A stretch of 64,000 nucleotides of DNA from Octopus sinensis (lineage: Eukaryota), in assembly GCF_006345805.1 (NCBI RefSeq), contig NC_043021.1:3348001-3412000 (forward strand), in the 5' to 3' direction. The stretch's first letter is position 1. Each line of letters begins with the position of its first letter. The position numbers were made by a program, and so were the translations under genes. Below are positions 7,201 through 53,109 of the stretch, in pieces. The notes beneath the pieces are model-generated. The model was not told the origin of the DNA, searched no databases, and was given only the letters and a program-made list of their open reading frames with translations.

Positions 7201-7705
7201 CCAATGCAATATGAGTTCCGTCATTCCACTGCTTTGAGGTGAATTGGGAACCCCGATTGGATGAGATGCTGTCTGGGACACCGAAACGGGCGACCCAGTT
7301 GGCCATGAAGGCTCGGCTGATTTCTTGTGTTTCTGTGCTACGGAGAGGAATAGCCTCGGGCCAGCGGATGTTGCGGTCTACCAAGGTCAGTAGATACGAG
7401 CAACCTTGTGAAGGTGGTAGGGGGTTGACATGGCTGAATCGAGCCAGTAATGGTTCATAGTTGCCGAGGAGTGCTTTGGTGTGTTGATGGACCTTGGGTT
7501 GTTGAAAGGGGATGCAAGTCCTGGTCCAGTCCCCGATTTGCTTGGCCATACCGTGCCAGATAAATTTGCTTGACAGCAGCCGCCGTGTGGCTTTAGTACC
7601 TGGGTGGGGGAAGTCTGTGAATTACGCCGAAAACTTTCTTGCGCCAGGCTGATGGTACGATCGGTCGTGGCTTCCCAGTGGATACGTCATACAGTTTGGT
7701 TATTG
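7201..7705 (-). mobile_element. Gypsy LTR retrotransposon remnant: integrase N-terminal half
   Basis: DVSTGKPRPIVP..WTRTC..KVHQH..RFSHV..YLLTLVDR..RWPEAIPL..WVARFGVPDSISSNRGSQFTS. Confidence 0.9.
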
Positions 7706-18035: not shown

Positions 18036-18203
18036 AAGTGTGCCTCATCAGAAATGTAGTTAAGTGTTGCTTCAACTCTCTTTTCTCCTCCGTAAAAGTT
18101 ATCCTATGTTTGCAGTACTTTGCTTCTTTGATCAGTAAACATTTCCACAGTTTTATTTCATTATTTTGCTTTTTCTATATATTTACAGTTGAAAATTTTT
18201 ACA

Positions 18204-24200: not shown

Positions 24201-26585
24201 ACTAGCTCAGCTGTTGATAGTAAAGCGAAGACTGGCTCAGCTGTTGATAGTAAAGCAAAGACTGGCTCAGCTGTTGATAGTAAAGCAAAGACTGGCTCAG
24301 CTGTTGACAGCAGTAAAGTAAAGACTGGCTCAGATGTTGATAGTAAAGCAAAGACTGGCTCAGCTGTTGATGGTAAAGCAAAGACTGGCTCAGCTGTTGA
24401 TAGTAAAGCAAAGACTGGCTCAGCTGTTGATAGTAAAGCGAAGACTGGCTCGGCTGTTGATAGTAAAGCAAAGACTGGCTCAGCTGTTGATAGTAAAGCA
24501 AAGACTGGCTCAGCTGTTGACAGCAGTAAAGTAAAGACTGGCTCAGCTGTTGATAGTAAAGCAAAGACTGGCTCAGCTGTTGATAGTAAAGCAAAGACTG
24601 GCTCAGCTGTTGACAGCAGTAAAGTAAAGACTGGCTCAGCTGTTGATAGTAAAGCAAAGACTGGCTCAGCTGTTGATAGTAAAGCAAAAAGTGGCTCAGC
24701 TGTTGATAGTAAAGCAAAAAATGGCTCAGCTGTTGATAGCAGTAAAGCAAAGACTGGCTCAGCTGTTGATAGTAAAGTGAAGACTGGCTCAGCTGTTGAT
24801 AGCAGTAAAACAAGGACTGGCTCGGCTGTTGACAGCAGTAAAGTAAAGACTGGCTCAGATGTTGATAGCAATAAGTTGAAAACCAGTTCAGATGCTGAAG
24901 TCAGTAAGGAGACAACTGACTCTAAAATCACTAAGGTGAAGACTGAATTAGCTGTTGGTATCAGTATGGTGGAAAATGGTTCTGATGTTGAAATTAGTGA
25001 GGTGAAAAGTAGCTTAGATATTGACATCAATAAAATGAAAGCTCACTCAGATGTTTTTATCAGTAGAATGAAAACAGAAGGTGGTTTGGGTATTCGGGTC
25101 AGTAAGGTAAAGACCAACTCAGATGCTGAAACCATCAGCAAGATGGAAACTAGTTCAACTGTCAGTTGTCATAAGGTGAAGACTGATCCAACTATCAGTA
25201 GCAAAAAGGTGAAGATTGACTCAACTGTTGAAGCCAGTAAGGTGAAGAAGGAACCGAGTGTTGGTAACGGGAAACAATCCACAGTCAAAAATGCCTATAA
25301 AAGACATTTGTCAAGTGAAGTTACATCTAATGAGAAAAAAGTCCGTGTAAATTGTAGTACTGACAGTCAAGACAGAAAGAATAGATCAAGCCCCGATGAC
25401 TGTCATCGGATAAAGAATGCTGTATATTTTGATATTTCCAGCAAGAAAGATTTGTCGTCTACCAACATTTCTTGTGGGAAAACTATCACAACAAAATCTA
25501 ACAGTTCATTTAAATATGTTGATAGTTCTGTTACTCTTAATAAGAACAAAAACGCAACAAATGTCAGCAACTCTAGTAAGAAAATACTCAGCACCTCCAC
25601 TTCCAGTGTAGTATTCTCTAAAGCTGATAGTTCCAGTAAAAAGATTCTATCTGGTGCTCACACTTCTGATGTAAAATCTTCATCTAAAGCCAACACATCC
25701 AATAAAGAGTTTTTGTCAAATGCTGACATGTCCAGGAACAAGATTTTATCTAAAGCTGACACATCCAGTAAAAAGGACTTATCTAGAGCTGGCACATCTA
25801 ATAAAAAGACTTCATCTAAAGCCGACACTCACAGCAACAAGACTTCATCTAAAGCCGACACTCACAGCAACAAGATTTCATCTAAAGCCGACACTCACGG
25901 CAACAAGACTTCATCTAAAGCCGACACTCACAGCAACAAGACTTCATCTAAAGCCGACACTCACGGCAACAAGACTTCATCTAAAGCCGACACTCACGGC
26001 AATAAGACTTTATCTAAATCCGATATGTCCACAAAGAAAACTTCATTGATAGTTGACACTTCCCGGAAAAAGACTTTATCTGATGCCAACATATCGATTA
26101 AGCCCGTACAAAATAATACTAACATTTCTAATAAGAAGACTTTGACAAATGCAAATGTTTCACAGAAGGAAAGAGCTGATACTACTGCCACTTCATTTAC
26201 TGGGGTGGTTCATCGAAGTGTTTCTGCCTCCAAGAGAGGCTCGGATGCTGTTAGAAAACCCAGTTCTAAAAAATGTAAGTTTTGTGAATTCACATCATTG
26301 AAAAGCTTTCAACTGATTAGGCACATGACTGTGAAACATGCCAAACAATACAAAGACTTCATTACAGAAAGAGAAATAAGAATTATAAAAGATGCAATTG
26401 TCAAGAACTCGAGAAAGGAGTATGTTTGTCCATTTTGCAAGCATTGTTGCAGCATTCGCACGGATTGTAAATTACACATATATCACAAGCATTTGCATTT
26501 AAAAACTCTGAAGTGCAGCCAGTGCATGTTTTTTACAAGGTTACCATTTCAGCTCGAACAACACCTTTCATTCCATTTGAAATAA
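18204..26585 (+). CDS. Large C2H2 zinc-finger protein (~2,793 aa, ~12 atypical fingers in N-terminal, central and C-terminal groups) with a giant S/T/K/D-rich tandem-repeat region; single coding exon
   Basis: Uninterrupted 8.4-kb ORF. Splice acceptor ttacag ends at 18188 and is followed by ACA-ATG-G at 18204. Fingers include CLICYKKFLRISSLKSHILWH, CTHCDFTADTYSLLAKHLKTH, CKFCEFTSLKSFQLIRHMTVKH, CSQCMFFTRLPFQLEQHLSFH. No TGEKP linkers. The frame is open back to the acceptor, so an upstream phase-0 coding exon cannot be excluded. Confidence 0.92.
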   Translation: MEDVKRSNIAEDSGNFSNSLLSVINKNAVNDTGNAANLPKIPVIVVSDSSDTEDSVPKRHLKFRMRINNSNEALFVILPKSIICLICYKKFLRISSLKSHILWHLHRDDVPSNNLCHSCKSNADISDCPSFKLIKKIMRNFLLSTIRKRQSLKNNSRSYRVDPNYDKVMITENTFTIENTTTETSSNNSHLDNNNSPTPSNTANNNKPKDLKDYKGNSIQDDLFKEKAVTSDQKERTTFDESSAVSDKLCVEPVIDSSEFMLVNGQYKCLSCSKDYTLNTINNHIMWHFHKGVDLCSKLHYISFSSGDTICPLVVQIINYLVSKEGKPIQVNWGKNNDGKIIFKVKLMKTATELNADTVVDNPISLTKKDNVPSFQSDSVTPPIAEYTINEPLVQDHSDSSDTQNSTCNSKAGSSHPTDKYLISECSNDTPTVCDKTDESLPLENDNQPVCKEMTEVTTAGTGGNNLHVQPVRKPDSSADVWSFYKCMVTGCNYSTLFPDNYLKHLKQLHENMHFYQCTHCDFTADTYSLLAKHLKTHTHPTEFLFPCGSSNCSYYTRVLSLLPKHFTSSHINCKKVLCKHCATEFTDLSQLLEHYHCNLLKSVKCSYCPARDTLRQRILHHLSLSHPGRPRQIIVSSQLVCSTKKQASGHVKLPTESTVKVMKETLISEQEQTAGFKTSCLSNDGTDDGDHRASEKYVNGLINPRNHTEELCKTGDWSNEQSETNGCSSELGGTSDYANEQCNGLSDFKQAQEQKGVKMKQLRKQKNRVKTKLKNSSKDISSIEGFNWSGESNGSCEQTYNNTAPVSNFINFDIAGRELDACLKICYEFLDQSLKCKLCFQTRKSTQEIHLHILQYHFHWYLWQCFKCKTNTYSLEEMHWHYQHKHRGLIICVKFLSLPQLAKGSDGRLCLQKEQKIVSEKSQKSKKSELYRQIRQHCVYEMVNSRNSKKEEDTANDKQRNKKLFIFLSDSQPLDEAEKIPDNDENTNNLAKGELDYEKNYKHKKLRKSSLNDKSHREIKKRKISSLLNESNIAIDTSNTDFKMEKTIKQGNNYNRNGLLLNVEKHLMVAQNSLPFRRGKKEKCLLHLRKETSLVNYTTWNQAFLTGNINTSFDNSCKMSSDPTVNNKKMKISPDTVEQSKEATGSDVKITIVKADSDVEISKVKTGSPVDNSKTRTGSPVDNSKTKIGSPVDNSKTRTGSPVDNSKTKTDSPVDNSKTKIGSPVNNSRTRTGSPVDNSKTKIGSPVDNSRTRTGSPVDNSKTKTGSPVDNSKTRNDSPVDNIKTRTDSPVDNSKTRTDSPVDNSKTKTGSPVDNSKTRTGAPVDNSKTRTGSPVDNSKTRSGSPVDNSKTKTGSPVDNSKTKTGSPVNNSKIRTDSPVDNSKTRTGSPVDNSKTRTDSPVDNIKTRTDSPVDNSETKTGSPVDNSKTRTGAPVDNSKTRTGSPVDNSKTRSGSPVDNSKTKTGSPVDNSKTKTGSPVNNSKTRTDSPVDNSKTRTGSPVDNSKTRTDSPVDNSKTRTDSLVDNIKTRTDSPVDNIKTRTDSPVDNIKTRTDSPVDNSKTRTDSPVDNSKTKTGSPVDNSKTRTGAPVDNSKTRTGSPVDNSKTRSCSPVDNSKTKTGSPVDNTKTWTDSPVDNTKTWTDSPVDNTKTRSGSHVDNSKTRSGSPVNNSKTRTDSPVDNSKTRTGSPVDSSKTRTGSPVHNSKTRSGSPVHNSKTKTGSPVDNTITRTGSHVDNSKTRTGSPVDNTKTRTGLPVDNSKTKTGSPVDNTKTRTGSPVDNTKTKTNLPVDNSKTRSGSHVDNSKTRSGSHVDNSKTRSGSHVDNSKTRSGSPVDNSKTKTGSPVDNTKTKTNLPVDNSKTRSGSHVDNSKTRSGSPVDNSKTRTGSPVDNSKTRTVSPVDNSKTKTGSPIDNSKTKTGSPADSNKVKIGSVADSNNTKTSSTVERNKVKTDSAVDSSKAKANLAVDSSKVKTGSAVDSKAKTGSAVDSKAKTGSAVDSKAKTSSAVDSKAKTGSAVDSKAKTGSAVDSKAKTGSAVDSSKVKTGSDVDSKAKTGSAVDGKAKTGSAVDSKAKTGSAVDSKAKTGSAVDSKAKTGSAVDSKAKTGSAVDSSKVKTGSAVDSKAKTGSAVDSKAKTGSAVDSSKVKTGSAVDSKAKTGSAVDSKAKSGSAVDSKAKNGSAVDSSKAKTGSAVDSKVKTGSAVDSSKTRTGSAVDSSKVKTGSDVDSNKLKTSSDAEVSKETTDSKITKVKTELAVGISMVENGSDVEISEVKSSLDIDINKMKAHSDVFISRMKTEGGLGIRVSKVKTNSDAETISKMETSSTVSCHKVKTDPTISSKKVKIDSTVEASKVKKEPSVGNGKQSTVKNAYKRHLSSEVTSNEKKVRVNCSTDSQDRKNRSSPDDCHRIKNAVYFDISSKKDLSSTNISCGKTITTKSNSSFKYVDSSVTLNKNKNATNVSNSSKKILSTSTSSVVFSKADSSSKKILSGAHTSDVKSSSKANTSNKEFLSNADMSRNKILSKADTSSKKDLSRAGTSNKKTSSKADTHSNKTSSKADTHSNKISSKADTHGNKTSSKADTHSNKTSSKADTHGNKTSSKADTHGNKTLSKSDMSTKKTSLIVDTSRKKTLSDANISIKPVQNNTNISNKKTLTNANVSQKERADTTATSFTGVVHRSVSASKRGSDAVRKPSSKKCKFCEFTSLKSFQLIRHMTVKHAKQYKDFITEREIRIIKDAIVKNSRKEYVCPFCKHCCSIRTDCKLHIYHKHLHLKTLKCSQCMFFTRLPFQLEQHLSFHLK
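21702..23945 (+). repeat. Coding minisatellite: 68 x 33-bp unit (ACTGGCTCACCTGTCGATAACAGTAAAACAAGG; peptide TGSPVDNSKTR)
   Basis: First unit at 21702, next array type begins at 23946; 2244 bp / 33 = 68 units in register. Confidence 0.95.
24111..24875 (+). repeat. Coding minisatellite: ~25 units of 30 bp (TGSAVDSKAK) mixed with 33-bp variants (TGSAVDSSKVK)
   Basis: 24111-24848 = 738 bp = 18 x 30 + 6 x 33, plus a final degenerate unit. Confidence 0.9.
25800..26020 (+). repeat. Coding minisatellite: ~6 x 33 bp (KADTHSNKTSS) with degenerate 11-aa flanking units
   Basis: AAAGCCGACACTCACAGCAACAAGACTTCATCT repeated in tandem. Confidence 0.9.
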
Positions 26586-36728: not shown

Positions 36729-38773
36729 TATATATATATATCAGTTAAAAGAAAAAAAAAATGGAGATGAAGAATTTAACCATTATTATGATTTACAAAT
36801 TGGTCATCTTCATTTCTTACAGCTGTTTCAATCAATACTCAACAATTCAATTACAAATTTCTACATTAAATTTGCGTTTATGTGACAGGAGCATAATTTC
36901 ATCAGAGGACAAAAAAAAAAATGTACCTTTTCCTGTAGACTAAATATTACTGCTTATAATTTGTATCACTATCTTTCCTCAATCATCTCTATTTTTACTT
37001 CATTTATTTTACTTTATTCTTAATCATATTCTAATCAATTGGTAAACCCTTTACCTGAGCATATAATAATACAAATTACGGTTTATAAACTGTAATATTT
37101 AGTCTGCTGAAATGAATTCATAGGTCAGCATATAACATCTCAAGGTACCTCATTTTTTCTCTTTTCCTCTGATGAAATTATGCTCATGTCACATAAATGC
37201 AAATTTAATGCACAAATTTTTAATTAAATTATTGAGTATTAATTGAAATGGCTTAAGAAATGAAGATGATCAATTTGCTAATAATATATAATTGTTAACT
37301 TCCTTATTGCCATTTTTTCTTCTTTTAACTGGATATAAACTATATGCTTACTATATACCTACTGTTCTAAGGGAATTTCATTCCCCAACAATACTAGGTA
37401 TTGAACCAGTATTTCCTTGGATATAACCATCCCTTCATGAGGTTAACATATTCTCTAAATTTATACATATATAAATGGCGGTGCCCCAGAATGGCCACAG
37501 CTCGTGAGCTGAAACTAAATGAAATAATAAAAAAAATTTTTTAATAAGTATATATATATATATATATATATATATCATCATCATCATCATCGTTTAGCGT
37601 CCGCCTTCCATGCTAGCATGGGTTGGATGGTTCAACTGGGGTCTGGGAAGCCAGAAGGCTGCACCAGGCCCAGTTTGATCTGGCAATGTTTCTACGGCTG
37701 GATGCCCTTTCTAATGCCAACCACTCCATGAGTGTAGTGGGTGCTTTTTACGTGCATAGCTACATATGCATAGCTACAGATGTGTACTCCCCCCAACTTT
37801 GTTGCCTCATAACTTCCAGAAAAATGGATACTTTTTAATGAAATATTCAACAAATACTGCTTAGATGCTGTGGATTCAGGATATTTAGGGATTTATCAGA
37901 ACTAGATATGTTGTCTCCTCAGCAACACTCTAGAAACCTCTCAAGCATATTTTGTATTTACTTGTCCACCAATCACTTTGCAGACACATTTTTTGTGGTA
38001 CAAGCACAAATAAGATTGCCACCCAGCAAAACTGAAAAGCCCTCACTAAGGGGGTGACATAAGATGGGTTAGGGTAGAAGAAACCACAGTATGATGGTGT
38101 GGGGGGAGCAGGAAACTGATTTGGATGAGAAGATTGTACAGGAGGAAGATATGTGACAACTGAGAGGACAGATTAGTGGAAGAGGAGACAGCAAATAGGA
38201 AAAGAAGGAAGAGTAGTGATGAGAGATATTACGAGTGATGGATTTCAATAACAACTGATGTGGGTAGTCATGTATCTCCTCCACACCGAGGCATCTGTTT
38301 CTGTCTGTCTATTCATAATTTAACCTCTCATCATCTGGCACAAAACCACCTCCCTCAATACTACTTCTACTCAGAGGGGTTTTGTCTTGCTGCTGCTGCT
38401 GCTGCAATGTAAAAAGCACCCAGTATACTCAGAGAAATAACTGGAGTTGGCTGTGTGGTTAGGGAGCTTGCTTCCTAGCTACATGGTTTCGGGTTCAGTC
38501 CCACTGCGTGGCACTTTGGGTAGGTGTCTTCTGCTATAGCCCCGAGCCGACCGGAGCTTTGTGATTGAATTCGGTAGGTGGAAGTTACTGCCGTGTGTGT
38601 ATGTATGTGTATAGCTGCTCAGTGCCTCTCCGAAAGAGAGAGAGGAAAGGCATCTGGTCACAGAAACCCTGCCAGAGCAGACACTGAAGCGTTTGGCACA
38701 ATCTTCTGATTTTCCAGTTCCTGTCAAACCATCCAACCCATGCTAACATGGAAGGAGGACATTAAAAGACAAT

Positions 38774-39496: not shown

Positions 39497-40397
39497 TATA
39501 CTAGCAGTATCGCCCGGCGTTGCTCGGGTTTGTAAGGGAAATAACTATAAAGCATTTTTAGAGAGTTATAGCCAAAAAATAGCAAAAAAATGCATTAAAA
39601 ATGGAAAAAATATGATGGTGAATTTTTTTTAAATCGTTGACTCATCGTAGACATTTTTAGAGAATTACTTCCCTTATATTAAAAAAAATATACATTAAAA
39701 TGGAAAAAAATGATGGTAAATTTTTTTTTAAATCGTAGACTCATCGTAGACGTGCGCTAATACCCAGAAGGGCTCGATATGAATCACGACTATAAGATAC
39801 CCGGTTTTGGTTAAACTACACCGCAAAATGTGGGAGTAGTTAGGAATCTAAATCAGAGTAGACAGACACACAACCTTACTTTTATATATAAAGACTAGCA
39901 GTATCGCCCGGCGTTGCTCGGGTTTGTAAGGGAAATAACTATATAAGCATTTTTAGAGAGTTACTTCCCTTATAGATGTCAATTCGGGCTTTCTTAGCCA
40001 TTTCTGTTTTGGTGTCTTCAAGCCATGGAGTCGTTGTTCTAAAAGAACGCTGGTCTCCTTGACAACGCTTTACGATGTTGATTTCCTTACACTCCCTTCC
40101 CCACAGCTTCACGAGGGAGGGAAGAAGGGGGAGAAGCAAACAGGTGCAGGTGTGACCATGGACGCCAACTCCGCCGCCATCGACACACGAAAATTTATGC
40201 ATTAAAATGGAATAAAAAAATGATGTTAAATTATTTTTAAAATCGTAGACTCATGCTAATACCCAGACGGGCTCGATATGAATCACGACTATAAGATACC
40301 CGGTTTTGGTTAAACTGCACCGCAAAATGTGGGAGTAGTTAGGAATCTAAATCGTAGGAGACAGACAGCACACAACCTCACTTTTATATATAAAGAT
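39497..40397 (+). mobile_element. Two tandem non-autonomous Helentron/Helitron-like (HINE/DINE-type) elements
   Basis: Each starts ACTAGCAGTATCGCCCGGCGTTGCTCGGG (internal inverted repeat) and ends TTTTATATATAAAGA; copies 39497-39894 and 39895-40397 abut directly. Confidence 0.7.
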
Positions 40398-41454
40398 ATC
40401 TAGCTGTAGCAACATTTTAACATTTGTTTCGCCATACTTGCACTGGCTTTTTTCTCCAGGACTATCACCAATCAACCGACTCCTTTGACATTCTCTTCAT
40501 GTGACTCAGCATCCTGAGATCTGTCTTCAGCACTTCCTTTTTCTGTCTTCCTAGATTTACCCCTTCTACAGCATCAATTCACTTTCAAACATTCAGCATT
40601 TCTTGTACAGCTCCCGACCTTCATAAACATCACGGGCCTATACGATGCTCTCTCTAACCCCATTTGGGTCCTATTTATGTATCACATATATTTTTAATAA
40701 TACTTCAGGTATTTTTTTTTTTCAAAGAAATTTTGAAAAGATCAATGACTAATCATTCCTGAATGACCCCCTCACCCTCCAAAGCATTCAACATCACTCA
40801 TTAACTCATTCTTTTCCTCTCATCTACCAATTACTATCACGGAAAATAAAATGCCTTATTTTAAAAAAAAAAATTTCTAAGTGATGCAACAACTGTAGCT
40901 AAAGAGACTTGCCAGTCCGCCTCATGGTCCCGGCCCACAAAATGGAAAAGGTGTTGCCCCAGAGGATGGCAAGGGAGATGTGCAAAAACAGTCACTCTGA
41001 CTCACAGGGCACTCACTTGTGGATAGCCATCTCTGCCTTGGTAGCAGTGACCACAGATGTAGTACAGGGGCCATCAACGTTAGGCCTCCACTTGTACACT
41101 CTGCTTCATTGCCCTTCTATCCAGTTTTTCTCATCTCGTGTAAATTCCATCTTTTATGCATACTTCAGCAGAGCATGCTCATTTAATTTCTCTCAAGTCT
41201 TTGCAAATATTCTGCCTCAGAAGCTGTAATTTCTACAAAAAAATAATCTTTCATCTTTTATTTATTTCATTCATTGAACCACGGCTTTGCTTGGGCATCA
41301 CCTTGAAGGGTTTAGTCGAATAAATCAACCCCATACTTTTATGGGGAGAAACATATATTTAGTCTATTTTTCTTTCTTTTTCACAGATTAAGAAAACCAA
41401 TAAACTACTAATTACAAAAGTTTAGAAAATTTGAAATTCTGAATTGAACCAACC

Positions 41455-43281
41455 ATGGGTCAACTGGCAAACCATTATCAGGTAGGGCCTTCACAGAAAC
41501 TTACTGCTGCAATTGGCAAACGTAAGGACTCTAAAGCATGTGGAGGAAGAACTGTGAATCCATTTATAGTGAAAGCTCTTATTTCCAAAATGGAACGTCA
41601 AGGAAAAATTGAACAGTATACATTAAAGAAACGAATAAATAATAATAGTTTGAGTCTGGAGAAAAGATATACAGAACTTTTCCCAAAACTACCAGAATAT
41701 AAGGATATGACAACTGAAAGACAGAAGCCTTTTAGTAAAACACTTTTCAAACGATTAGCACAAGTGTTAGTGGCTTTTTATCATCTTCTTCATAAAAAAA
41801 AAGTAACCAAAGTGTCCTTTTCCGAGATGCCATTTCCACGCAAACTGACAAGAGAATTTTCCATGCAACTATTTGAAAAGAAAAAGCCTCGTTCTATAGA
41901 AAGTGAAATACATGATGCTCAGAATCAGTGGCATGCAGCAATGAATATTGCAGCTCTTATGGCCAAGATGAGAGGAGACACACTGCTTACAGAAAGTGTA
42001 GCATCAACTACTGAAGATCTCTCTTTCAATCCTGGGTTTTTCAAAGTAGATAGAGAGACAACAATACTAAGCGAAGAAGCTCAAAATATTCTGAGACGCA
42101 TTCCAGAGAGAAGAACTCCTGAAGATGTAAAAATAGTTATCAACTGTCTTCAGAATGCTGGCCTTGCCTGTTTCTGCAACTACCCAGATGAAATTCAGAA
42201 GATGATTGCCAAAATAGCAGGCTATATGGTGGTGACACCTAAACGTGTAATCATTCGGCAAGGAATACGTGCTGAACACTTCTACTTCATTATTGGAGGT
42301 CGAGTGATGCTCTCAGAGAAAGATTATAAAATAGATGGGACAGAAACAGAAAAGACAACATTCTTACAGCCAGGTTCAAGTTTTGGAGAACAAGATATGG
42401 TAAACCACACACTTCGAAGATTTAGTGCTATCAGTGTCAACACAGTTCAGTTACTCACCATTGAACGGGAAGATATGCTAATGGAGTTCACAACTTATAA
42501 AGTTGACAAACAAGTACCAGACCATATTAAATTCCTTGCACATTGTAAATTTTTGCAATTCTGGCCAGTCGAGCGTTTAAGAAACAATTTGGAGCACTGT
42601 TTTGTATATTTTTTTAAAAGAGATGAATTGGTACTTGAAGATAGTCACAATACAGATTGGATTTATATAATGAAAAAGGGTATATGTAAGGTCGTCAAAA
42701 GATTAAAAAAACCACAAACACAACGTGTTAATATTGCCAATAATAGACTGAAATTCGTCTCAAATCCCAATTTTGAACAAATATTTAAATTACCACTAAA
42801 AAAAGCATATACAAATGCCAGGGTTTTAGATAACATAGAAGTTATTGATCCATTTGCAGACGATGGAGAGTTTTCTAAAATAGTTTCAAGCATTCCTTCA
42901 ACTGATAGATTATGCAACAAAACGAAGCAGGTAAATAACGATAACAATTATGTAAATGTGCAAATTGATTTGCTTAAATGTAGAGATGTTTTTGGTCTGG
43001 ACACATTGGTTTTTGATGAATATTACATACTTCCAGCCACTGATAGTGTTAGCCTAGTCAGTGGTGGGGCAGAAATAGTGTTGCTGTCAAAGAAATTCTT
43101 CATAAAAAATGCTTCTGAACTAGTGAAATGGCAGGTACGCAAACAAGCAAATAGCTATCCTAGTAACAATGACCTTGTTGTCAAACTAGAAAGTCAACAA
43201 ATGTGGAATGATTATAAAAAGAGTGTAATGTCAGAACTAGTGAGTGGAAAATTAAAACAAAGACCAAAAAGATGGAAATAA
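41455..43281 (+). CDS. Cyclic-nucleotide-binding-domain protein (CNBD1/CNBD2-like), 608 aa, copy 1; single coding exon
   Basis: ACC-ATG-G start with an in-frame TGA just upstream; acceptor tttcacag ends at 41386. CNB domain VIIRQG..HFYFIIGGRV..FGEQDMVNHTLRRFSA keeps canonical FGE-x8-R spacing. Second degenerate CNB domain (WIYIMKKG..VFGLD). AATAAA at 43503. Confidence 0.88.
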   Translation: MGQLANHYQVGPSQKLTAAIGKRKDSKACGGRTVNPFIVKALISKMERQGKIEQYTLKKRINNNSLSLEKRYTELFPKLPEYKDMTTERQKPFSKTLFKRLAQVLVAFYHLLHKKKVTKVSFSEMPFPRKLTREFSMQLFEKKKPRSIESEIHDAQNQWHAAMNIAALMAKMRGDTLLTESVASTTEDLSFNPGFFKVDRETTILSEEAQNILRRIPERRTPEDVKIVINCLQNAGLACFCNYPDEIQKMIAKIAGYMVVTPKRVIIRQGIRAEHFYFIIGGRVMLSEKDYKIDGTETEKTTFLQPGSSFGEQDMVNHTLRRFSAISVNTVQLLTIEREDMLMEFTTYKVDKQVPDHIKFLAHCKFLQFWPVERLRNNLEHCFVYFFKRDELVLEDSHNTDWIYIMKKGICKVVKRLKKPQTQRVNIANNRLKFVSNPNFEQIFKLPLKKAYTNARVLDNIEVIDPFADDGEFSKIVSSIPSTDRLCNKTKQVNNDNNYVNVQIDLLKCRDVFGLDTLVFDEYYILPATDSVSLVSGGAEIVLLSKKFFIKNASELVKWQVRKQANSYPSNNDLVVKLESQQMWNDYKKSVMSELVSGKLKQRPKRWK

Positions 43282-44437
43282 GTTCTAATCATTATTTAAA
43301 GTCATTAATTTTGAATGAGAGGAACAAGAAATTAATTCTGAAGAGAGAAGATATTTCCATTGTTTATCAAAGAAGAAATCAGAAAGTGATATGGAAAGAT
43401 AAATCTGAAACAAAGGGAGAATGAATATCAAGTCAAACGAGAAATGATGGCATGAAATTCTTCTTTGTTGAAATCAGTTCTAACTTCTTAAAAATGGTTT
43501 ATAATAAAACTTTTCTCTTGAATGCCAATCTGTTTTTCCTTAAAACACCTTTATGTTGTTTCGTGGCTTTATTACTGTTTAACCTTCAAATGGTCCTTTT
43601 GTTGTGAACTCTTAAGTGGGTGCTAGGTGTTTAGAGAGGTTATGTGCCTATACGATAATCTATCTAACTCCATATGTCCTTGTTATGTATCACATATATT
43701 TTTAATAATACTTCAGGTATTTTTTTTTTTCAAAGAAATTTTGAAAAGATCAATGACTAATCATTCCTGAATGATTCCCCCCCACCCTAAGCATTCAACA
43801 TCACTCATTAACTCATTCTTTTCCTCTCATCTACCAATTACTATCACGGAAAATAAAATGCCTTATTTAAAAAAAAAAAATTTCTATGTGATGCAACAAC
43901 TGTAGCTAAAGAGACTTGCCAAAATGGAAAAGGTGTTGCCCCAGAGGATGGAAAGGGAGATGTGCAAAAAAAGTCACTCTGACTCACAGGGCACTCACTT
44001 GTGGATAGCCATCTCTGCCTTGGTAGCAGTGACCACAGATGTAGTACAGGGGCCATCAACGTTAGGCCTCAACTTGTACACTCTGCTTCATTGCCCTTCT
44101 ATCCAGTTTTTTTCATCTCGTGTAAATTCCATCTTTTATGCATACTTCAGCAGAGCATGCTCATTTAATTTCTCTCAAGTCTTTGCAAATATTCTGCCCT
44201 CAGAAGCTGTAATTTCTACAAAAAAATAATCTTTCATCTTTTATTTATTTCATTCATTGAACCACGGCTTTGCTTGGGCATCACCTTGAAGGGTTTAGTC
44301 GAATAAATCAACCCCATACTTTTATGGGGAGAAACATATATTTAGTCTATTTTTCTTTCTTTTTCACAGATTAAGAAAACCAATAAACTACTAATTACAA
44401 AAGTTTAGAAAATTTGAAATTCTGAATTGAACCAACC

Positions 44438-46252
44438 ATGGGTCAACTGACAAACAATTATGAGTTAGGGCCTTCACAGAAACTTATTGCTGCACTTGGC
44501 AAACAAGAGGACAGTATGGAATGTGTAGGAACAACTGTGAATCCATTTATAGTGAAAGCTCTTATTTCGAAAATGGAACGTCAAGGAAAAATTGAACAGT
44601 ATACATTAAAGAAACGAATAAATAATAATAGTTTGAGTCTGAAGAAAAGATATACAGAACTTTTCCCAAAACTACCAGAATATAAGGATATGACAACTAA
44701 AAGAGAGAAGCCTTTTAGTAAAACGCTTTTCAAACGATTAGCACAAGTGTTAGTGGCTTTTTATTGTCTTTTTCATAAAAAAAAAGTAACCAAAGGGTCC
44801 TTTCCTGAGATGCCATTTCTACGCAAACAGAAAGGAGAAAGTTCCACACTACTATTTGAAAAGAGAAGGGTTCGGTCAGATGAAGGTGAAATACACGATG
44901 CTCAGAATCAGTGGCATGCAGCAATGAATATTGCAGCACTTATGGAAAAGATTAAAGGAGACACACTGTTTACAGAAAGTGTAGGATCAACTACTGAAGA
45001 TCTCTCTTTCAATCCTAGTTTTTTCAAAGTAGATAGAGAGACAACAATACTAAGCGAAGAAGCTCAAAATATTCTGAGACACATTCCAGAGAGAAGAACT
45101 CCTGAAGATGTAAAAATAGTTATCAACTGTCTTCAGAATGCTGGCCTTGCCTGTTTCTGCAACTACCCAGATGAAATTCAGAAGATGATTGCCAAAATAG
45201 CAGGCTATATGGTGGTGACACCTAAACGTGTAATCATTCGGCAAGGAATACGTGCTGAACACTTCTACTTCATTATTGGAGGTCGAGTGATGCTCTCAGA
45301 GAAAGATTATAAAATAGATGGGACAGAAACAGAAAAGACAACGATCTTACAGCCAGGGACAAGTTTTGGAGAACAAGATATGGTAAACCACACACTTCGA
45401 AGATTTAGTGCTATCAGTGTCAACACAGTTCAGTTACTCACCGTTGAACGGGAAGATATGCTAAGGGGATTCATAAGTTATAAAGTTGACAAACAAGTAC
45501 CAAACCATATTAAATTCCTTGCACATTGTAAATTTTTGCAATTCTGGCCAGTCGACCATTTAGGAAACAATTTGGAGCACTGTTTTGTATATTTTTTTAA
45601 AAGAGATGTAGTGGTACTTGAAGACAGTCACAATACAGATTGGATTTATATAATGAAAAAGGGTATATGTAGGGTCGTCAAAAGATTAAAAAAACCACAA
45701 ACACAACGTGTTAATATTGCCAATAATAGACTGAAATTCTTCACAAATACCAATTCTGAACAAAACTTTAAATTACCACTGAGAAAATCATATACAAATG
45801 CCAGGGTTTTACATAGCATAGATGTTGCAGACAGTGTGGTTTTTCCTAAAATAGCTTCAAGCATTCCTTCAACTGATAGATTATGCAACAAAACGAAGCA
45901 GGTATATAACGATAACAATTATGTAAATGTGCAAATTGATTTGCTTAAACGTAGAGATGTTTTTGGTCTGGACACATTGGTTTTCGACGAATATTTCATA
46001 CTTCCAGCCACTGATAGTGTTAGCCTAGTCAGTGGTGGGGCAGAAATAGTGTTGCTGTCAAAGAAATTCTTCATAAAACATGCTTCTGAACTAGTGAAAT
46101 GGCAGGTACGCAAACAAGCAAATAGCTATCCTAATAAAACTGACCTTGACGTCAAACTGGAAAGTCAACAAATGTGGAATGATTATAAAAAGAGTGTAAT
46201 GTCAGAACTAGTGAGTGGGAAAAAAAAACAAAGACCAAAAAGATGGAAATAA
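44438..46252 (+). CDS. Cyclic-nucleotide-binding-domain protein (CNBD1/CNBD2-like), 604 aa, copy 2; tandem paralog
   Basis: Same architecture as copy 1; acceptor ends at 44369; AATAAA at 46447; intact ORF. Confidence 0.88.
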   Translation: MGQLTNNYELGPSQKLIAALGKQEDSMECVGTTVNPFIVKALISKMERQGKIEQYTLKKRINNNSLSLKKRYTELFPKLPEYKDMTTKREKPFSKTLFKRLAQVLVAFYCLFHKKKVTKGSFPEMPFLRKQKGESSTLLFEKRRVRSDEGEIHDAQNQWHAAMNIAALMEKIKGDTLFTESVGSTTEDLSFNPSFFKVDRETTILSEEAQNILRHIPERRTPEDVKIVINCLQNAGLACFCNYPDEIQKMIAKIAGYMVVTPKRVIIRQGIRAEHFYFIIGGRVMLSEKDYKIDGTETEKTTILQPGTSFGEQDMVNHTLRRFSAISVNTVQLLTVEREDMLRGFISYKVDKQVPNHIKFLAHCKFLQFWPVDHLGNNLEHCFVYFFKRDVVVLEDSHNTDWIYIMKKGICRVVKRLKKPQTQRVNIANNRLKFFTNTNSEQNFKLPLRKSYTNARVLHSIDVADSVVFPKIASSIPSTDRLCNKTKQVYNDNNYVNVQIDLLKRRDVFGLDTLVFDEYFILPATDSVSLVSGGAEIVLLSKKFFIKHASELVKWQVRKQANSYPNKTDLDVKLESQQMWNDYKKSVMSELVSGKKKQRPKRWK

Positions 46253-47442
46253 GTTCTAATCATTATTTAAAGTCATTGATTTTGAAGAGAGAAGATATTT
46301 CCATTGTTTATCAAAGAAGAAATCAGAAAGTGATATGGAAAGATAAATCTGAAACAAAGGGAGAATGAATATCAAGTCAAACGAGAAATGATGGCATGAA
46401 ATTCTTCTTTGTTGAAATCAGTTCTAACTTCTTAAAAATGGTTTATAATAAAACTTTTCTCTTGAATGCCAATCTGTTTTTCCTTAAAACACCTTTATGT
46501 TGTTTCGTGGCTTTATTACTGTTTAACCTTCAAATGGTCCTTTTGTTGTGAACTCTTAAGAGGGTGCCAGGTGTTTAGAGAGGTTGTGGTTTTTCTTAGA
46601 AATAAAATATTTAAGCTTGATTTAGTATTTATATTCTAAACACATTTAAAAATATTTTACTTGTTTCAGACTGCGGCCATGCTGGGGCATCACCTTGAAG
46701 AAATTTTAGTCAAATAAATCAACCCTAATACTTATTTTGATTTTTTTAAAGCTAGGTATTTATTCTATAAGTCTCTATTGCTGAACTGCTGAGTTATGGG
46801 GATGTAAACACACCAACACTGGTTGTCAAGCAGTGGTGGTGGACAAACAGACAAAAAGATACATACATAAATAAACACACACAACAGGCTTCTTTCAGTT
46901 TCCATCAACCAAATTCACTGACAAGGTTTTGGTTGGCCTGGGGCCCAACCATGTGGTTGGGAAGCAAACTTCTGACCACGTAGCCATGCCTACATCATCA
47001 TCATCATTTAGCGTCCGCTTTCCATGCTAGCATGGGTTGGACGGTTCAACTGGGGTCTGTGAAGCTGGAAGGCTTCATCAGGCCCAGTCAGATCTGGCAG
47101 TGTTTCTACGGCTGGATGCCCTTCCTAACACCAACCACTCCGTGAGTGTAGTGGGTACTTTTTACGTGCCACCCGCACAGGTGCCAGATGGAGCTGGCAA
47201 ACGGCCACGAACGGATGGTGCTTTTACGTGTCACCGGCACGGGGGCCAGGCGAGGCTGGCAATGGACACGAACGGATGGTGCTTTTACGTGCCACCAACA
47301 CGGGGGCCAGACCTACATCATATTCAAAATATTTCATTAGTTATGAATTTCATGTTTCAGTAACAATGTTTATTATGTGTGAAACTTACAACTAGAGAAA
47401 CAGATGTGACATGAAAAAGACGAACCTCCACGGAAGCAATCA

Positions 47443-47498
47443 GTGTCAAGAGGTCATGGTGTCAAGAGGTCATGGTGTCAAGAGGTTATGGTGTCAAG
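47443..47498 (+). repeat. 3.5 x 16-bp tandem repeat (gtgtcaagaggtcatg)
   Basis: Directly visible. Confidence 0.9.
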
Positions 47499-49848
47499 GT
47501 TTGTTCTAGTTCTTTAGACAGTCAGCCATCAACACATCACAAGACAATGGAACAGACAGTTCAAAAACATGGGAGGTTGGTCAAATAAAGTAACGACTCC
47601 CGAATGTCCTTCCAAGGCTATGTGATTAAAAAAAATAGATTCAACTTTTATCGGACAAGTGAATTAAGAATTTGAAGAAAATTATTGAAATTTCACCAAT
47701 TTTGCAAAATGTCCCCTATTAGCTATGCCACTTATAACAGCACATCACCGCATCCACCATTTGTTGGTGATACCCTACTCCTAGTGGATGATGATATTTT
47801 AGGTACTGAATTAGCTGAGTTATTAGAGGAGTAGAACAAAGTGCTTTAGAGTATTTATAACAACCCTTCGGCCCACTGATCTAATTGGATGGTCATTGCT
47901 GACGAGGGGTTTTACTAGGTTGGAGTGTAAATCATACCTGAAGCCTATTTTAGTTGCCTTTTACAACACTCAGAGGAAATGTGGAGTCTATTCTTTGGCA
48001 TGGCAATTCCTGGCACAATACAAGAGCAACATGAAATGAACTGTTTTGCTCAAGAATACAAGCTGCCTGGTCCAGGAATTGAACCCATGATCTGATGATT
48101 GTGAGTGCAACACCTAAAATACTAGCCCACATGCCTGAAGGAAGGGTCCAAATGGTGAAGACCTGAGTAAAATAGGCATAAAAGGGGTCCATAGGTGAAA
48201 AATGGTTGAGAAACACTGGACTAAACCCTTCAAGGCAGTGCCCCAGCATGGCAGCAGTCTGAAATAAGTAAAAGATAAAAAGATTAGATAGGTCCCTTAC
48301 CAAGTTGGGTAGCTGTGAGTTTTTGTTAAGTAGCGATTAGGGTTAGGGTTAGTGAAACACAAATACATCCAATAGGTTTCTTTTAGTTTCCATTTACCAA
48401 ATACACTCACATGGCTTTAGTCAACTCAAAACTACAAGAGAAGACATTTGACCAAGATGCAATGCAGAGGAATTGAACCCAGAACAATGTGGTTGGGAAG
48501 TAATCTTCTTAACTGCAGCAACACTGTGCCAAATTTTTATGGTAAGGACCCACCAAGACAAGTGAAGCTGTAGTCATGACAACATAAACCAAATTAGAAA
48601 GATGGAACGGGCTGGGCATGTGTAAGCTGCAAGATGAAACGTATATTGGTTTCAAATTTTGGCACGGGCCCAGCAAGTTTGACAGAAGGGATAAGTCAAC
48701 TGCATCGCCACTGGTGCTTATTTTATCAACCCTGGCAGAATTGGAACTCAGAAACTGCGTGTCACTTTGGGTAGGTGTCTTCTGCTATAGCCCCGAGCCG
48801 ACCGAAGCTTTGTGATTGAATTCGGCAGGCGGAAGTTACTGCCGTGTGTGTAGGTGCTTGTGCCTCTCTGAAAGAGAGAGAGGGAATGCCAAGACGGATG
48901 AAATGCTGCTAAGTAATGACCCACCAAGCCAAGTGAAACTGTAGTCGTGGCCGATACCAGTGTTACGTAACAGGCACCTGTGCCAGTGGCACATAAAAAA
49001 AGCACCCTTCGAATTTTGGGCCTCGCAGAGGTGATAAGTGACCAAAACCTCAGGCAATATGCTGCACTTGAGAACACCCACCAAGTCAAGGGAAATCATA
49101 GCCATGGCTGATGCTGGTGTCATGTAACAGGCACCTGTGCTGATGGCACATGAAAGGCATGCACCCATTACACTCTTGGAGTGGTTGGCATTAGGAAAGG
49201 CATCCAGCTGTAGAAACTATGCCAAATCAGATTGGAACCTGGTGCAGCTCTCCAGCTTACCAGTTTCAGTCAAACTATCTAACCCATGCCAGCATGGAAA
49301 GCAGATGAAGATGATGCTGATGATGATGATGATGATGATATACTCAGTGAAATGACTTCAATACATGTTTATCAAACTGAGAGTGATTTAGATTAGAAAA
49401 TATAGATGAACCAACTAAATAATCTGGTATTATATCATTTGTCCTTCTCTACTGAAATTTTTGGGCAAATGATAGAAAGGTTAAAAAAAAAAAAAAATCA
49501 AAACTTTTAATTTACAATTGGATTCCCATAAAAATTTATTCATTTTTTAAAGATGTTGTTGTTGTGTTATTATTTAAGTTGTAAAATACTTGAGTGGGTG
49601 AGGAGTTGTTGTTTTTGTATTTTGAGGCAGCGATTGGTGGCTCGGAATATATCTTCCAAAATCACCAAGGCAGCCAATAAACAACTAATGATCAAGAAAA
49701 AAAAAAAAAAAAGACCCAGAATGACTTATGTCTGTCACAGAAGAGAGTGTCAGCAAATGAAGGGAGTGGGGTATGATGAAGGAGATAAAGATAGACAACA
49801 CGAGAGGTAAAAACATACAAGAGGTAGAGCACCCGCCTCAATGGCCCC

Positions 49849-50400
49849 CTAAGATGGATATTGCCAAACATCTGTTGATATCTGCTCAGTCTGAATCACT
49901 TTGTTCACCCGCTTTAATTTAAAATTACGACACAGACTCAGTATTTGAATCTTCAGTTCATATTTGTCCGACTCATTTTTTATCTGCCTCAACTCTTCCC
50001 CTACAATTTTGCCAAACATTTCATCGACGTCGACCTGGACAGACGATGGCGTGGGATCTTTGAACTCATTAAATATATCGTCGCACGTGTTGAGAACTTG
50101 TACGCTACGAGTTTCAATGTGGTTGGCTGACTTGGACTTTTTGGGTTTGTCACTGTTCGTCGGTGACAGCGACCGCTTAATGAAGAGTGTGTGTGGCATT
50201 AACGAAAAGTCATCAATGTTTGGGTTCGGTTGTGCTTCATGCGTAAGACGTGGTGAGTCCTGACTCACATTGGAAGCATCTCCATTCCAACAGTCAGAAT
50301 CTCTGTTTTGGAGGTAGCTGTGTTCATCAGGCCAGCTGGTGACAGATTCATCCATTTCTCCTTGGTCCAAAGGATTCACAACATGTGCCGGAATATTCGC
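49849..50400 (-). CDS. MADF protein gene A, exon 3 (acidic linker and BESS-like C-terminal motif); full product 305 aa
   Basis: Acceptor cattccag, phase 0 matching exon 2; DEMFGKIVGEELRQIKNESDKYELKIQILSLC resembles the BESS-like tail of MADF proteins; TAG at 49849-49851. Confidence 0.8.
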   Translation of the reverse strand, partial: ANIPAHVVNPLDQGEMDESVTSWPDEHSYLQNRDSDCWNGDASNVSQDSPRLTHEAQPNPNIDDFSLMPHTLFIKRSLSPTNSDKPKKSKSANHIETRSVQVLNTCDDIFNEFKDPTPSSVQVDVDEMFGKIVGEELRQIKNESDKYELKIQILSLCRNFKLKRVNKVIQTEQISTDVWQYPS

Positions 50401-50518
50401 CTGGAATGTTAAAAACAAGAGAATATAAGAGTCAGTAAGGTGAAGACTGGGGAGGAGAAAAATGACAAAACTCAGACCTTTGTCACAGGCAATGCCTTGT
50501 CATCTTCGGCTTCATCAT

Positions 50519-51145
50519 TTAACCCTTTAGCATTCAGAAACCTGGACGTTATCAAAGAAGCTTGGGAGGCGGTTGGATGGAACCTACACTCGCCTCCTTA
50601 TGAGAGCTCAAAATCTCTCGTGGAGGCGCCATCCAACCAAAATGCAAATATATGGGAAACTACCACCTGTGTCATCTCTTGTGAAAGGTAGGAGAGTCCA
50701 GTTTGCTGGACATTGTTGTAGAGCTGAAAACGAGGTAATTTCTACTCTTCTCCTCTGGAAGCCATCTACTCGCAATACCAGAGGGCGTACACTCTCCTAC
50801 CCTGATGTAATCTCCAGGGATACAGGCATCCAGCAACAGGACCTCCGTAATGCTATGATGGACCGTGAAGTCTGGCGTAACATAGTAAATTCCATTGTCT
50901 CGACCACGGTCGAACAATAATGATGATTAGCATTCAGATTATTCTGTCAAAGGTAACACTTTTTCATTCAAACTGTTTTTAATTAATCCTGCATTATTTT
51001 GCAGCTTTGAAATTTTGATGACGTGACTGCATATTTTATAATGGCATTGAAGGGTAGGTATGATAGACTTGATCTGGATGGTTAGAACATAAAACATGAA
51101 GCATATTTGGGCCGGACATAGCCAGTTTAAATGCTAAAGGGTTAA
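50519..51145. mobile_element. piggyBac-type MITE interrupted by the RTE fragment
   Basis: TTAA-CCCTTTAG...CTAAAGGG-TTAA termini; homologous to 16279-16505. Confidence 0.7.
50539..50926 (+). mobile_element. 5'-truncated RTE-type LINE 3' end
   Basis: TWTLSKKL.RRLDGTYTRLLMRA..RRVQFAGHC..DREVWR; (GAT)n tail; 12-bp TSD ttagcattcaga at 50527 and 50927. Confidence 0.85.
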
Positions 51146-51409
51146 TGTTTATTTTTCCATGTTTGTATGGGTCAGACAAAATTTGTTGAAACAGATTTTT
51201 TTTTTTGAAGTTGGATGCCTGGCCTCTTGCCAACAGTTACTTGTTTCCATGCAAGGGGATATTTCATTGTGTGTGTGGTGTCTGTGAATGTTTATATTGC
51301 GGATTGTACATGAAAAAAGCACTGAGCTATATAGACAACCTTGTTTGTCAACAAAATCGTCCACTAACTCTGCCTTTTCAAATATTAGTGGAATGAAAAT
51401 CCCTTACTA

Positions 51410-51800
51410 GGTGCAGGAGTGGCTGTGTGGTAAGTAGCTTGCTAACCAACCACATGGTTCAGGGTTCAGTCCCACTGCGTGGCACCTTGGGCAAGTGTCT
51501 TCTACTATAGCCCCGGGCCAACCAATGCCTTGTGAGTGGATTTGGTAGACGGAAAACTGAAAGAAGCCCGTCGTATATATGTATATATATATGTGTGTGT
51601 GTGTTTGTGTGTCTGTGTTTGTCCCCCTAGCATTGCTTGACAACCGATGCTGGCGTGTTTATGTCCCTGTCACTTAGCGGTTCGGCAAAAGAGACCGATA
51701 GAATAAGTACTGGGCTTACAAAGAATAAGTCCCGGGGGTCGATTTGCTCGGGCCACAGTCAAATGACTGAAACAAGTAAAAGAGTAAAAAGAGTAAGAGT
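51410..51800 (+). mobile_element. SINE family A (intron 2 of MADF gene A)
   Basis: Near full length. Confidence 0.88.
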
Positions 51801-53109
51801 ACTTGAAAATCATACCAGGGCATCCAGCAGTAAAAACAATACTTCAATAACATGTATTTCTTCTAAGCCATGTTATTAGCACAGAGGAGTAGATGTAAAG
51901 CAAATAAACAAAATAACTGAACTTGACCTCAGCCCTGCTTCCTGGTTCTCCTTCAGTTACAATAATGAGTATTCCAGTTGATTCAATTAATGGAATAGCC
52001 TGCTCGTGAAATTAACGTGCAAGTGGCAGAGCACTCCACAGACACACGTACCCTTAAAGGGCAGTTCTCAAGGAGATTCAGCATACATATTGAATGTGAC
52101 AAGGCTGACCCTTTGAAATACAGGTACTACTCATTTTTGCCAGCTGAGTGGACTGGAGTAACATGAAATAAAGTGTCTTGCTCAAGGACACAACGCGCCA
52201 CCAGGAATCGAACTGACAACCTTATGATCGAATACCGTAATCATTAAGCCACGTGCCTCCAGTATCTTACAGTTAATAGAAAAATCACAACAGCAAAGTG
52301 GAAAAGCCTAACAATAGTTGTTATGATAAAAGTGCATCCAATGCATTTTGTGAAGTGGTGGATAAATGAAGGGAGACACCATAGAGTTGAGAGTACTTTT
52401 TGGCAGGGATACAATAGCCTCTCCAGCACTGGTGCTATGGAAAGAATATTTGCCCAGTACGCTCTACAATGGCTAATGAACGTACAGAGAATGTAGGGTT
52501 CAGGAGTATGCTTTGGTGTTTTCTTGTCAAGAACACTAACACCTCTCTAGTGCCGATGTGTGATGACAAAATGCACCCTGTACACTCTGTAGAGTGGTTG
52601 ACATTAGTAAAAGGCATCCAGCCATAGAATGTAGCAACCATGCCAAATGAAAATAGACAAAAGAGGCATGGTCCCAGGTCACACGTAGGAGGGCAGCAAC
52701 CCAAACAAGGACTCAGACTTTGATGACCTTTTCAACACATGCCAGCATGGTAAATGGATGTAAGATGATGAGTGATGTATACAAGCATACAGGGAGTTCA
52801 GGCTAAATATGATTATTTTTTTTCTTTTTCTCCTTTTTTCAGGAACAACTTGATATATTGGTGAACAGTCGACAGCATTGGAGAGCATAAAGATTTAAGT
52901 TGTAGTTGAGAAAAAGTTAACTGACATGGTGGACTGGAAACCATCTAAATATTAGAAAAGAGGTACCTATGTCATGATGATTGATGCTGGGTATTAAAAT
53001 GCCAACATCATGACTGCTGCTCAGTACTCTGTGAACACCATACATAGATACATACACACACACATTCACAGATATGCAAGCATGGAAAAGCAGATGCTAA
53101 ATGATGGTA

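Follow-up and report, generated by a model that had tools for sequence, protein, structure and literature searches.

A tandem pair of CNBD2/CRIS-like genes in Octopus sinensis with mosaic divergence between the copies

A 64,000-nucleotide stretch of the Octopus sinensis genome (contig NC_043021.1, positions 3,348,001 to 3,412,000; called the window below, with positions counted from its first letter) carries two intact, head-to-tail genes for proteins with a cyclic nucleotide-binding (CNB) domain that resemble CNBD2, the protein known in mouse as CRIS. Along the pair, tracts of near identity alternate with short segments in which amino acid changes are crowded. We consider it reasonably probable that this is a lineage-specific CNBD2/CRIS tandem duplicate whose mosaic pattern reflects two processes, the fast evolution of predicted disordered segments and gene conversion between the copies. 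The initial annotation of the locus, made from the sequence alone, had ascribed the pattern to positive selection outside the ligand-binding surface after duplication, with patchy gene conversion as the alternative.

Comparison by blastn delimited a head-to-tail repeat of 3.0 kb, in which 40636-43641 and 43646-46585 are 93.4% identical over 3011 columns. The repeat and the genes within it are laid out as follows.

40636 to 43641, + strand: duplication unit 1, comprising 819 bp upstream, the copy 1 coding sequence and ~360 bp downstream (blastn and boundary sequences)
43642 to 43645, + strand: junction filler ATGT, preceded by the last bases of unit 1 (…GAGAGGTT) and followed by the first bases of unit 2 (GCCTATACG…), from boundary comparison
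43646 to 46585, + strand: duplication unit 2 (blastn), with a counterpart also in Octopus vulgaris (locus L002)
41455 to 43281, + strand: copy 1 coding sequence, single exon, 608 amino acids, CNBD2/CRIS-like (open reading frame list; Pfam PF00027, E=9e-14)
44438 to 46252, + strand: copy 2 coding sequence, single exon, 604 amino acids (open reading frame list; Pfam PF00027, E=4e-13)

Neither breakpoint has a repeat, as a comparison of the junction with both outer boundaries showed; the head-to-tail duplication therefore arose by non-homologous joining, which left the 4-bp filler. No third CNBD2 copy was found within the 64-kb window.

The pair is present in an independent assembly. The window is collinear with the Octopus vulgaris reference (GCA_951406725.2, OX597838.1, L002) at 98.3% identity over 11 kb, compared with 88-92% identity to Octopus bimaculoides (L001), and the O. 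vulgaris assembly holds both copies in the same order with both open reading frames intact. The copy 1 protein is 99% identical to its O. vulgaris counterpart (P0001) and 78% identical to O. bimaculoides CNBD2 (P0002). Positions distinguishing the two copies follow the copy in both assemblies in 107 cases and the species in 3, which excludes haplotype mis-assembly and indicates that exchange has been almost nil since the two genomes separated. The initial annotation had named two haplotypes of one gene assembled in tandem as a reading that would undo its proposal. High flank similarity is all that speaks for such an artefact, which we regard as scarcely credible, given that the same two copies with 107 common copy-specific differences recur in GCA_951406725.2, that they differ by 6.6% and a 12-bp coding indel, and that they meet at a defined junction with a 4-bp filler. 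Copy 2 of O. vulgaris (L002 13013-16410) is annotated as a spliced product of 373 amino acids ending …CTELAELLEE, at a locus that holds an intact single-exon frame of 604 amino acids; this annotation is probably a gene-model error.

The relative age of the duplication could be read from the single-copy relative. O. bimaculoides has one CNBD2 copy at the syntenic site (L001), adjoining the same MADF-domain gene. Quartet-informative coding sites group copy 1 with copy 2 at 59 positions, against 10 and 5 for the alternatives, and favour this pairing inside the divergent patches too. Because these sites favour the pairing of the two copies, the duplication post-dates the split from O. bimaculoides, and an older duplication followed by loss of a copy in O. 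bimaculoides was rejected on the same counts.

Several lines of evidence identify both genes as CNBD2-like. Pfam cNMP_binding (PF00027) matches residues 261-342 of both proteins above the gathering score (E ~1e-13), and the Pfam scan of both proteins returned nothing besides cNMP_binding. After octopus sequences, the next-best protein matches are CNBD2-like proteins of abalone, starfish, crinoids and annelids; matches named CNBD2 or CNBD2-like by their annotators come from Haliotis, Patiria, Antedon and Anneissia, with 39-74% query coverage and E values of 1e-56 to 1e-68, the direct comparison being with these invertebrate proteins. The O. bimaculoides orthologue is likewise named CNBD2 by NCBI. 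An exact look-up of both window proteins in the protein collection found neither, and we found no mention of octopus CNBD2 in the literature.

The first CNB domain is canonical. Residues G311, E312 and R321 of its phosphate-binding cassette are invariant in a 15-sequence cross-phylum alignment and present in both copies. The octopus R321 is the counterpart of the ligand-contacting R288 of mouse CRIS, whose mutation abolishes the cyclic AMP (cAMP) response (PMC3854790), and both octopus copies may thus be predicted to bind cAMP. The AlphaFold model shows two beta-barrels, with a mean predicted local distance difference test score (pLDDT) of 60 overall and of 76-90 in the barrel blocks, except for 57 in residues 521-530. 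The strands of the second barrel, 382-418 and 499-545, flank a low-confidence insert at 422-496.

42235 to 42480, + strand: first CNB domain (Pfam, residues 261-342), with the phosphate-binding cassette at 42379-42423 carrying G311, E312 and R321
42598 to 43089, + strand: second CNB-like beta-barrel, degenerate (residues 382-545) and interrupted by ~75 inserted residues (Foldseek and Pfam)

That the protein has a second CNB domain with an insert had been proposed from the sequence; the barrel and its insert are both present in the model, and the CNB fold is plausible rather than proven because it rests on a weak Pfam match obtained without the insert and on the Foldseek scores. The Pfam match to cNMP_binding (E=0.038, below the cut-off) appears only when the insert is cut out, and the C-terminal half with the insert kept gave no Pfam match. 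Foldseek matched the model best to tandem CNB-A/B modules, those of PKA regulatory subunits and of PKG, over 350-415 columns with template modelling scores of 0.35-0.42 and a large root-mean-square deviation (RMSD). These modules align with both barrels (Foldseek E ~1e-14 to 1e-13), but the octopus proteins share only 11-15% identity with them, have a degenerate second barrel split by the ~75-residue disordered insert and, unlike PKA regulatory subunits and PKG, have no dimerisation/docking segment, inhibitor segment or kinase partner motif. A search for a solved CNBD2 structure found none; a match to a sperm-axoneme structure (9fqr_Xk) was rejected as CNBD2, since that chain is PKA RI-alpha.

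Mouse CRIS (CNBD2) is needed for sperm, and its expression is limited to sperm precursor cells (PMC3854790). The octopus proteins resemble it in having one canonical CNB domain with the cassette Gly-Glu and Arg, a length of ~600 amino acids and no other recognisable catalytic or effector domain. They differ from it in that the octopus gene is intron-less, tandemly duplicated in the O. vulgaris group and very fast within Octopus, with a ratio of non-synonymous to synonymous rates (omega) of ~1. Larval ciliary bands express cnbd2 in two other marine invertebrates, an echiuran and a hemichordate. By analogy, octopus CNBD2 may have a role in sperm or cilia, and the label of reproductive protein that the initial annotation had suggested would follow from mouse CRIS only.

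In all three octopus genomes one exon holds the whole coding region (the window copies; L001 10001-11830), compared with an 18.8-kb span for the CNBD2-like gene of Haliotis asinina (L005 2001-20813). Because of this difference in gene structure a retrogene origin is possible, and octopus CNBD2 may be a retrogene that replaced its parent; the protein search returned no intron-containing second octopus copy. An acceptor-like ttctttctttttcacag stands ~70 bp upstream of the ATG of each copy (41370-41390 and 44353-44373) and is conserved in a distant octopod contig (L003), the ends of which lack poly(A) and are collinear with the genome through ttctttctttttcacag. This hints at a possible intron in the 5' untranslated region (UTR).

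The differences between the copies are strongly uneven. Where ~230 identical bp ahead of the ATG had been described from the sequence, the copies agree over 240 bp and on into the first 12 coding bases, and within 41131-41466 only a 1-bp indel near 41214 separates them. The 3' flank, said to differ mainly by an indel, has one mismatch (43307) and one 27-bp indel (~43312), followed by ~280 identical bases to 43616. Between these flanks lie three patches of amino acid change.

41455 to 41553 (copy 2: 44438-44536), + strand: N-terminal fast patch, codons 1-33, predicted disordered, with 14 non-synonymous and 1 synonymous difference in the first 30 codons
41812 to 41913 (copy 2: 44795-44896), + strand: middle fast patch, codons 120-153, a predicted disordered linker
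42754 to 42894 (copy 2: 45737-45865), + strand: third fast patch, codons 434-480, with a 12-bp indel, within the residues inserted into the second CNB-like barrel

The counts given for these patches were reproduced. In the N-terminus 12 of the first 33 residues differ, and the one codon difference that keeps its residue, Ser26 TCT/AGT, is not a simple synonymous change, as it needs two non-synonymous steps. In residues 120-153, 14 amino acids differ and three codons (R146, S147 and H153) differ while keeping their residue, and the indel of the third patch is 12 bp (4 amino acids) near 42842, within the low-confidence residues 422-496. The first CNB domain is indeed nearly invariant, with residues 216-302 identical and 3 differences in the Pfam match at 261-342.

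In 30-codon windows, non-synonymous differences are clustered (variance/mean 4.7, p=5e-11), whereas synonymous differences show no significant clustering (variance/mean 1.2, p=0.26); the two window counts correlate (rho 0.46-0.66). Nei-Gojobori synonymous (dS) and non-synonymous (dN) distances are 0.061 and 0.064 between the copies, compared with 0.11 and 0.12 to O. bimaculoides. Segments with pLDDT below 50 in the AlphaFold model comprise residues 1-65, 112-151, 169-172, 174-202 and 422-496, and the three patches, together with the sites of high posterior probability of selection, fall within them. Amino acid differences between the copies are 3.9-fold enriched in these segments (p=5e-8), and they are equally enriched between O. 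bimaculoides and a more distant octopod sequence, X. Derived changes in 41801-41897 comprise seven on copy 1 and seven on copy 2, with five ambiguous, and 18 of the 91 differing codons carry two or three differences.

Both copies are under selection as proteins. The 1.8-kb coding sequence has 110 substitutions and 1 in-frame indel between the copies, compared with 24 substitutions and 6 indel events in 1.2 kb of flank. For 110 random substitutions, the probability of no premature stop is 0.008, and omega on the terminal branches is 0.30, below 1 (p=0.005). We conclude that both copies are retained as protein-coding because their frames are open, coding indels are scarce and the terminal-branch omega is 0.30; pseudogene-like neutrality was rejected on the same three grounds, and an omega of ~1 at these copies does not mean pseudogene decay.

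Codon likelihoods were calculated with our own GY94/F3x4 code on six sequences: the window copies (S1, S2), the O. vulgaris copies (V1, V2), the single copy of O. bimaculoides (B) and X, a 67%-identical octopod sequence taken from two 2-kb Logan contigs that forms a long outgroup branch. Under the free-ratio model, omega was 1.07 on the single-copy B branch (p=0.87 against 1), 1.10 on the pre-duplication stem (p=0.76), 1.44 on the copy 1 branch (p=0.39), 1.37 on the copy 2 branch (p=0.42) and 0.39 on the X branch (p=3e-10). Because B and the stem already stand at 1.07 and 1.10, we take the acceleration to be a property of CNBD2 in the genus Octopus and not an effect of duplication.

Site models supported a class of fast codons. 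Model M2a was preferred over M1a with all six taxa (twice the log-likelihood difference, 2dlnL, 41.6; 17% of sites at omega 3.9), with five taxa excluding X (2dlnL 28.65, p=6e-7; 24% of sites at omega 4.3), with copy 1 only (2dlnL 28.6) and with copy 2 only (2dlnL 28.3). The fast class ranged over these four data sets from 3.6 to 5.2 in omega and from 0.11 to 0.24 in proportion, and since the single-paralog sets are still significant, an artefact of exchange between paralogs is ruled out. In a clade-type model the fast-class omega was 5.0 after the duplication versus 4.0 on B and the stem (p=0.56), and 0.45 on the tips (p=0.001). When the low-pLDDT partition was given its own branch lengths, its omega on internal Octopus branches was 1.84 (p=0.016), compared with 0.74 for the folded partition.

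The individual patches behave differently in these tests. For all patches together, omega on the two copy branches was 3.0 (p=0.019), and for the N-terminal patch it was far above 1 (p=0.012), both for regions chosen post hoc. The N-terminal patch has ~14 non-synonymous changes and 0 simple synonymous changes next to 336 non-coding bases with no substitution and one 1-bp indel. In the middle patch dS is 0.235 and dN 0.293, for an omega of 1.3 that is not significant, and the synonymous-scaled branch length is 4-7 times that of the rest; in the third patch (codons 434-480) omega is ~4 and also not significant. The initial annotation had held that dS raised as much as dN in the patches would speak for old divergence plus conversion, and this is what the middle patch shows and the N-terminal patch does not. 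Its proposal of positive selection survives in part: the patches lie outside the ligand-binding core and a class with omega ~4 is supported, but the link to the time after duplication does not hold, as omega on the copy branches is not significantly above 1 and the fast class is no stronger there than on B and the stem.

The similarity of the flanks calls for a separate account. In the proximal flanks, 8 of 863 positions differ between the copies and 52 of 871 differ between S1 and O. bimaculoides. From the synonymous ratio (0.061/0.111) ~24-28 flank differences would be expected where 8 are seen; conversely, the copies have 22 synonymous differences where flank divergence would predict ~5-6, so youth cannot explain the near-identical flanks. 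A Sawyer-type permutation of polymorphic sites identified three concordant tracts.

41131 to 41466 (copy 2: 44113-44449), + strand: upstream homogenised tract, reaching to ~40877 in the O. vulgaris pair and ~6% different from O. bimaculoides
42099 to 42356 (copy 2: 45082-45339), + strand: CNB-A core homogenised tract, a 14-site run and the third-longest (P=0.0006)
43372 to 43612 (copy 2: 46316-46556), + strand: downstream homogenised tract, a 15-site run and the second-longest (P=0.005)

The upstream run, the longest, ends at 41464 and comprises 20 concordant polymorphic sites for S1/S2 (P=0.011) and 24 for V1/V2 (P=0.003), and in codons 241-300 dN and dS between the copies are both 0. From these patterns we infer conversion as the homogenising mechanism. 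Gene conversion, which had been offered as the alternative to positive selection, is thus probably present in the flanks and CNB-A core, but as a companion to the fast evolution of the patches rather than a substitute for it. The copies do not cluster by species as they would under ongoing concerted evolution (107 sites by copy versus 3 by species), and because sites group by copy the conversion would be older than the split of the two genomes. One of the by-species sites is codon 153 (41911-41913 / 44894-44896), where both window copies have His (CAT/CAC) and both O. vulgaris copies have Asn (AAT), which suggests a short recent conversion or a parallel change.

In the account we favour, rate heterogeneity along the protein would predate the duplication, with the disordered tail, linker and insert evolving at or above the neutral rate in all Octopus lineages, the single-copy one included, a class of sites at an omega of ~4, and the CNB cores constrained. 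Non-allelic gene conversion or unequal exchange would have made the two flanks and the CNB-A core alike before the sampled genomes separated, and selection would have kept copy-specific N-terminal residues against conversion. Homogeneity in the upstream tract gives way at the first N-terminal difference, 12 bases into the coding sequence, which fits selection resisting conversion and could also be coincidence. The rapid evolution of the disordered segments is probably in part positive selection, and the tests above lead us to infer that selection in them has been positive rather than merely relaxed. Several points weigh against this account. No single Octopus branch has a gene-wide omega significantly above 1. 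The site models assume a uniform synonymous rate and single-nucleotide changes, and the 2-3 times higher dS of the patches and the 18 of 91 multi-hit codons may each inflate their tests; the likelihoods come from our own code on six sequences and not from PAML or HyPhy, and the low-pLDDT partition depends partly on conservation. Conversion is deduced from older homogeneity alone, with post-split exchange almost absent (3 by-species sites), and constraint on the UTR or promoter could explain part of the flank similarity (6% versus a dS of 0.11 to O. bimaculoides). The window and the O. vulgaris reference may also come from different individuals of one species rather than from two species.

These same observations bear on a reading without positive selection, in which unconstrained disordered patches drift, perhaps with a higher local mutation rate, the rest is kept alike by conversion or constraint, and the site-model signal is artefactual. 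The coincidence of the patches with pLDDT<50 segments, the gene-wide omega of ~1, a middle-patch dS as high as its dN, synonymous-scaled lengths that on every branch are 2-3 times greater in the patches, the correlation of synonymous and non-synonymous window counts (rho 0.46-0.66) and the presence of multi-hit codons are all as it would have them. We nevertheless think it rather unlikely, given the preference for M2a (p<1e-6) in four data sets that include single-paralog sets, the omega of 1.84 (p=0.016) in a low-pLDDT partition with its own branch lengths, and an N-terminal patch whose ~14 non-synonymous and 0 simple synonymous changes adjoin 336 non-coding bases with 0 substitutions.

A duplication-triggered burst of positive selection, with neo-functionalisation of one or both copies and flanks identical through youth, would account for the nearly identical flanks, and the copy branches do have the highest omega in the tree (1.44 and 1.37), significantly higher than a pooled background in which the distant outgroup is counted (2dlnL=10.3), as well as the raised patch omega (3.0, p=0.019) and N-terminal omega (p=0.012). 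The copy-branch values are, however, not significantly above 1 gene-wide, and the patch tests were post hoc; the single-copy B branch (1.07) and the stem (1.10) are fast too, the fast class is equal on B and the stem (p=0.56), and a dS of 0.061 between the copies contradicts their youth, which together make such a burst improbable. A third, more divergent CNBD2 gene at some other genomic site, donating the patches by conversion, would fit the clustering of differences and a middle patch in which both dS and dN are raised. Such a donor is very improbable in light of the even split of derived changes between the copies within the patches, the quartet sites that support the pairing of the two copies inside the patches too, and the lack of a third octopus homologue in the protein search and of a third copy in the window.

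The surroundings of the pair contain repeats and a few other coding regions. Interspersed and short tandem repeats occur upstream of the duplication (39600-40370), an exact 50-mer repeat (ACTAGCAGTATCGCCCGGCGTTGCTCGGG…) lies at 39500-39549 and 39894-39943, and a pair of 102-bp sequences, 95% identical and 10 kb apart, is found at 38503-38604 and 48754-48855; the repeats around the duplication are probably SINE-like (short interspersed nuclear element-like). In the two other octopus genomes, the minus-strand gene that follows downstream (~47000-52000 in the window) encodes a MADF DNA-binding domain, and the 189-amino acid open reading frame at 49849-50418 (- strand), taken alone, gave no Pfam match. 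Further upstream, 18189-26585 (+ strand) is an uninterrupted open reading frame of 2798 amino acids with Cys/His zinc-finger-like motifs near both ends (weak Pfam match to a ZNF462 C2H2 finger, E=0.006). Its interior contains 11-residue repeats in a very long array (…SPVDNSKTRTG…, then …SAVDSKAKTG…), and this array causes the strong AT skew at 20-26 kb. At 7073-7549 (- strand), a 158-amino acid open reading frame resembles part of a retroelement integrase (…SNRGSQFTS…) and is probably a transposable-element remnant.

Duplicates with mosaic divergence under conversion and selection have been described before, reportedly in Innan's model for human RHD/RHCE, with further examples in cichlid RH2a opsins and deer-mouse globins. 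The octopus pair resembles RHD/RHCE-type systems in that homogenised tracts alternate with islands centred on amino acid differences in which nearby synonymous differences are kept, but its islands are fast also in an unduplicated relative, so these islands are not the work of paralog-specific selection alone. Rapidly evolving reproductive proteins, such as abalone lysin and other sperm proteins under sexual selection, offer a second parallel in their gene-wide omega near 1, a site class well above 1, recurrent change and lineage-specific duplication; in the octopus proteins, by contrast, the selected sites lie in predicted disordered segments and not at a known binding interface, and a reproductive role is suggested by the mouse protein. 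A bolder proposal, which we regard as doubtful, is that sperm or motile cilia use the copies as two cAMP sensors with separate functions, whose disordered tails and linkers would bind partners under recurrent selection of the sexual-selection type and be protected from conversion, making this an Innan-type 'divergence island' in a cephalopod CRIS retrogene.

As it stands, the locus is a tidy but ordinary case that calls for no new kind of mechanism. Molluscs were placed among the groups that lack CRIS in the 2013 paper on the mouse protein (PMC3854790), and the octopus genes correct that record: CRIS/CNBD2 exists in molluscs. If our reading is right, the pair would provide a cephalopod case for three familiar themes: fast evolution in a protein with a probable signalling role in sperm or cilia, the keeping of both members of a young tandem pair, and selection interacting with gene conversion.

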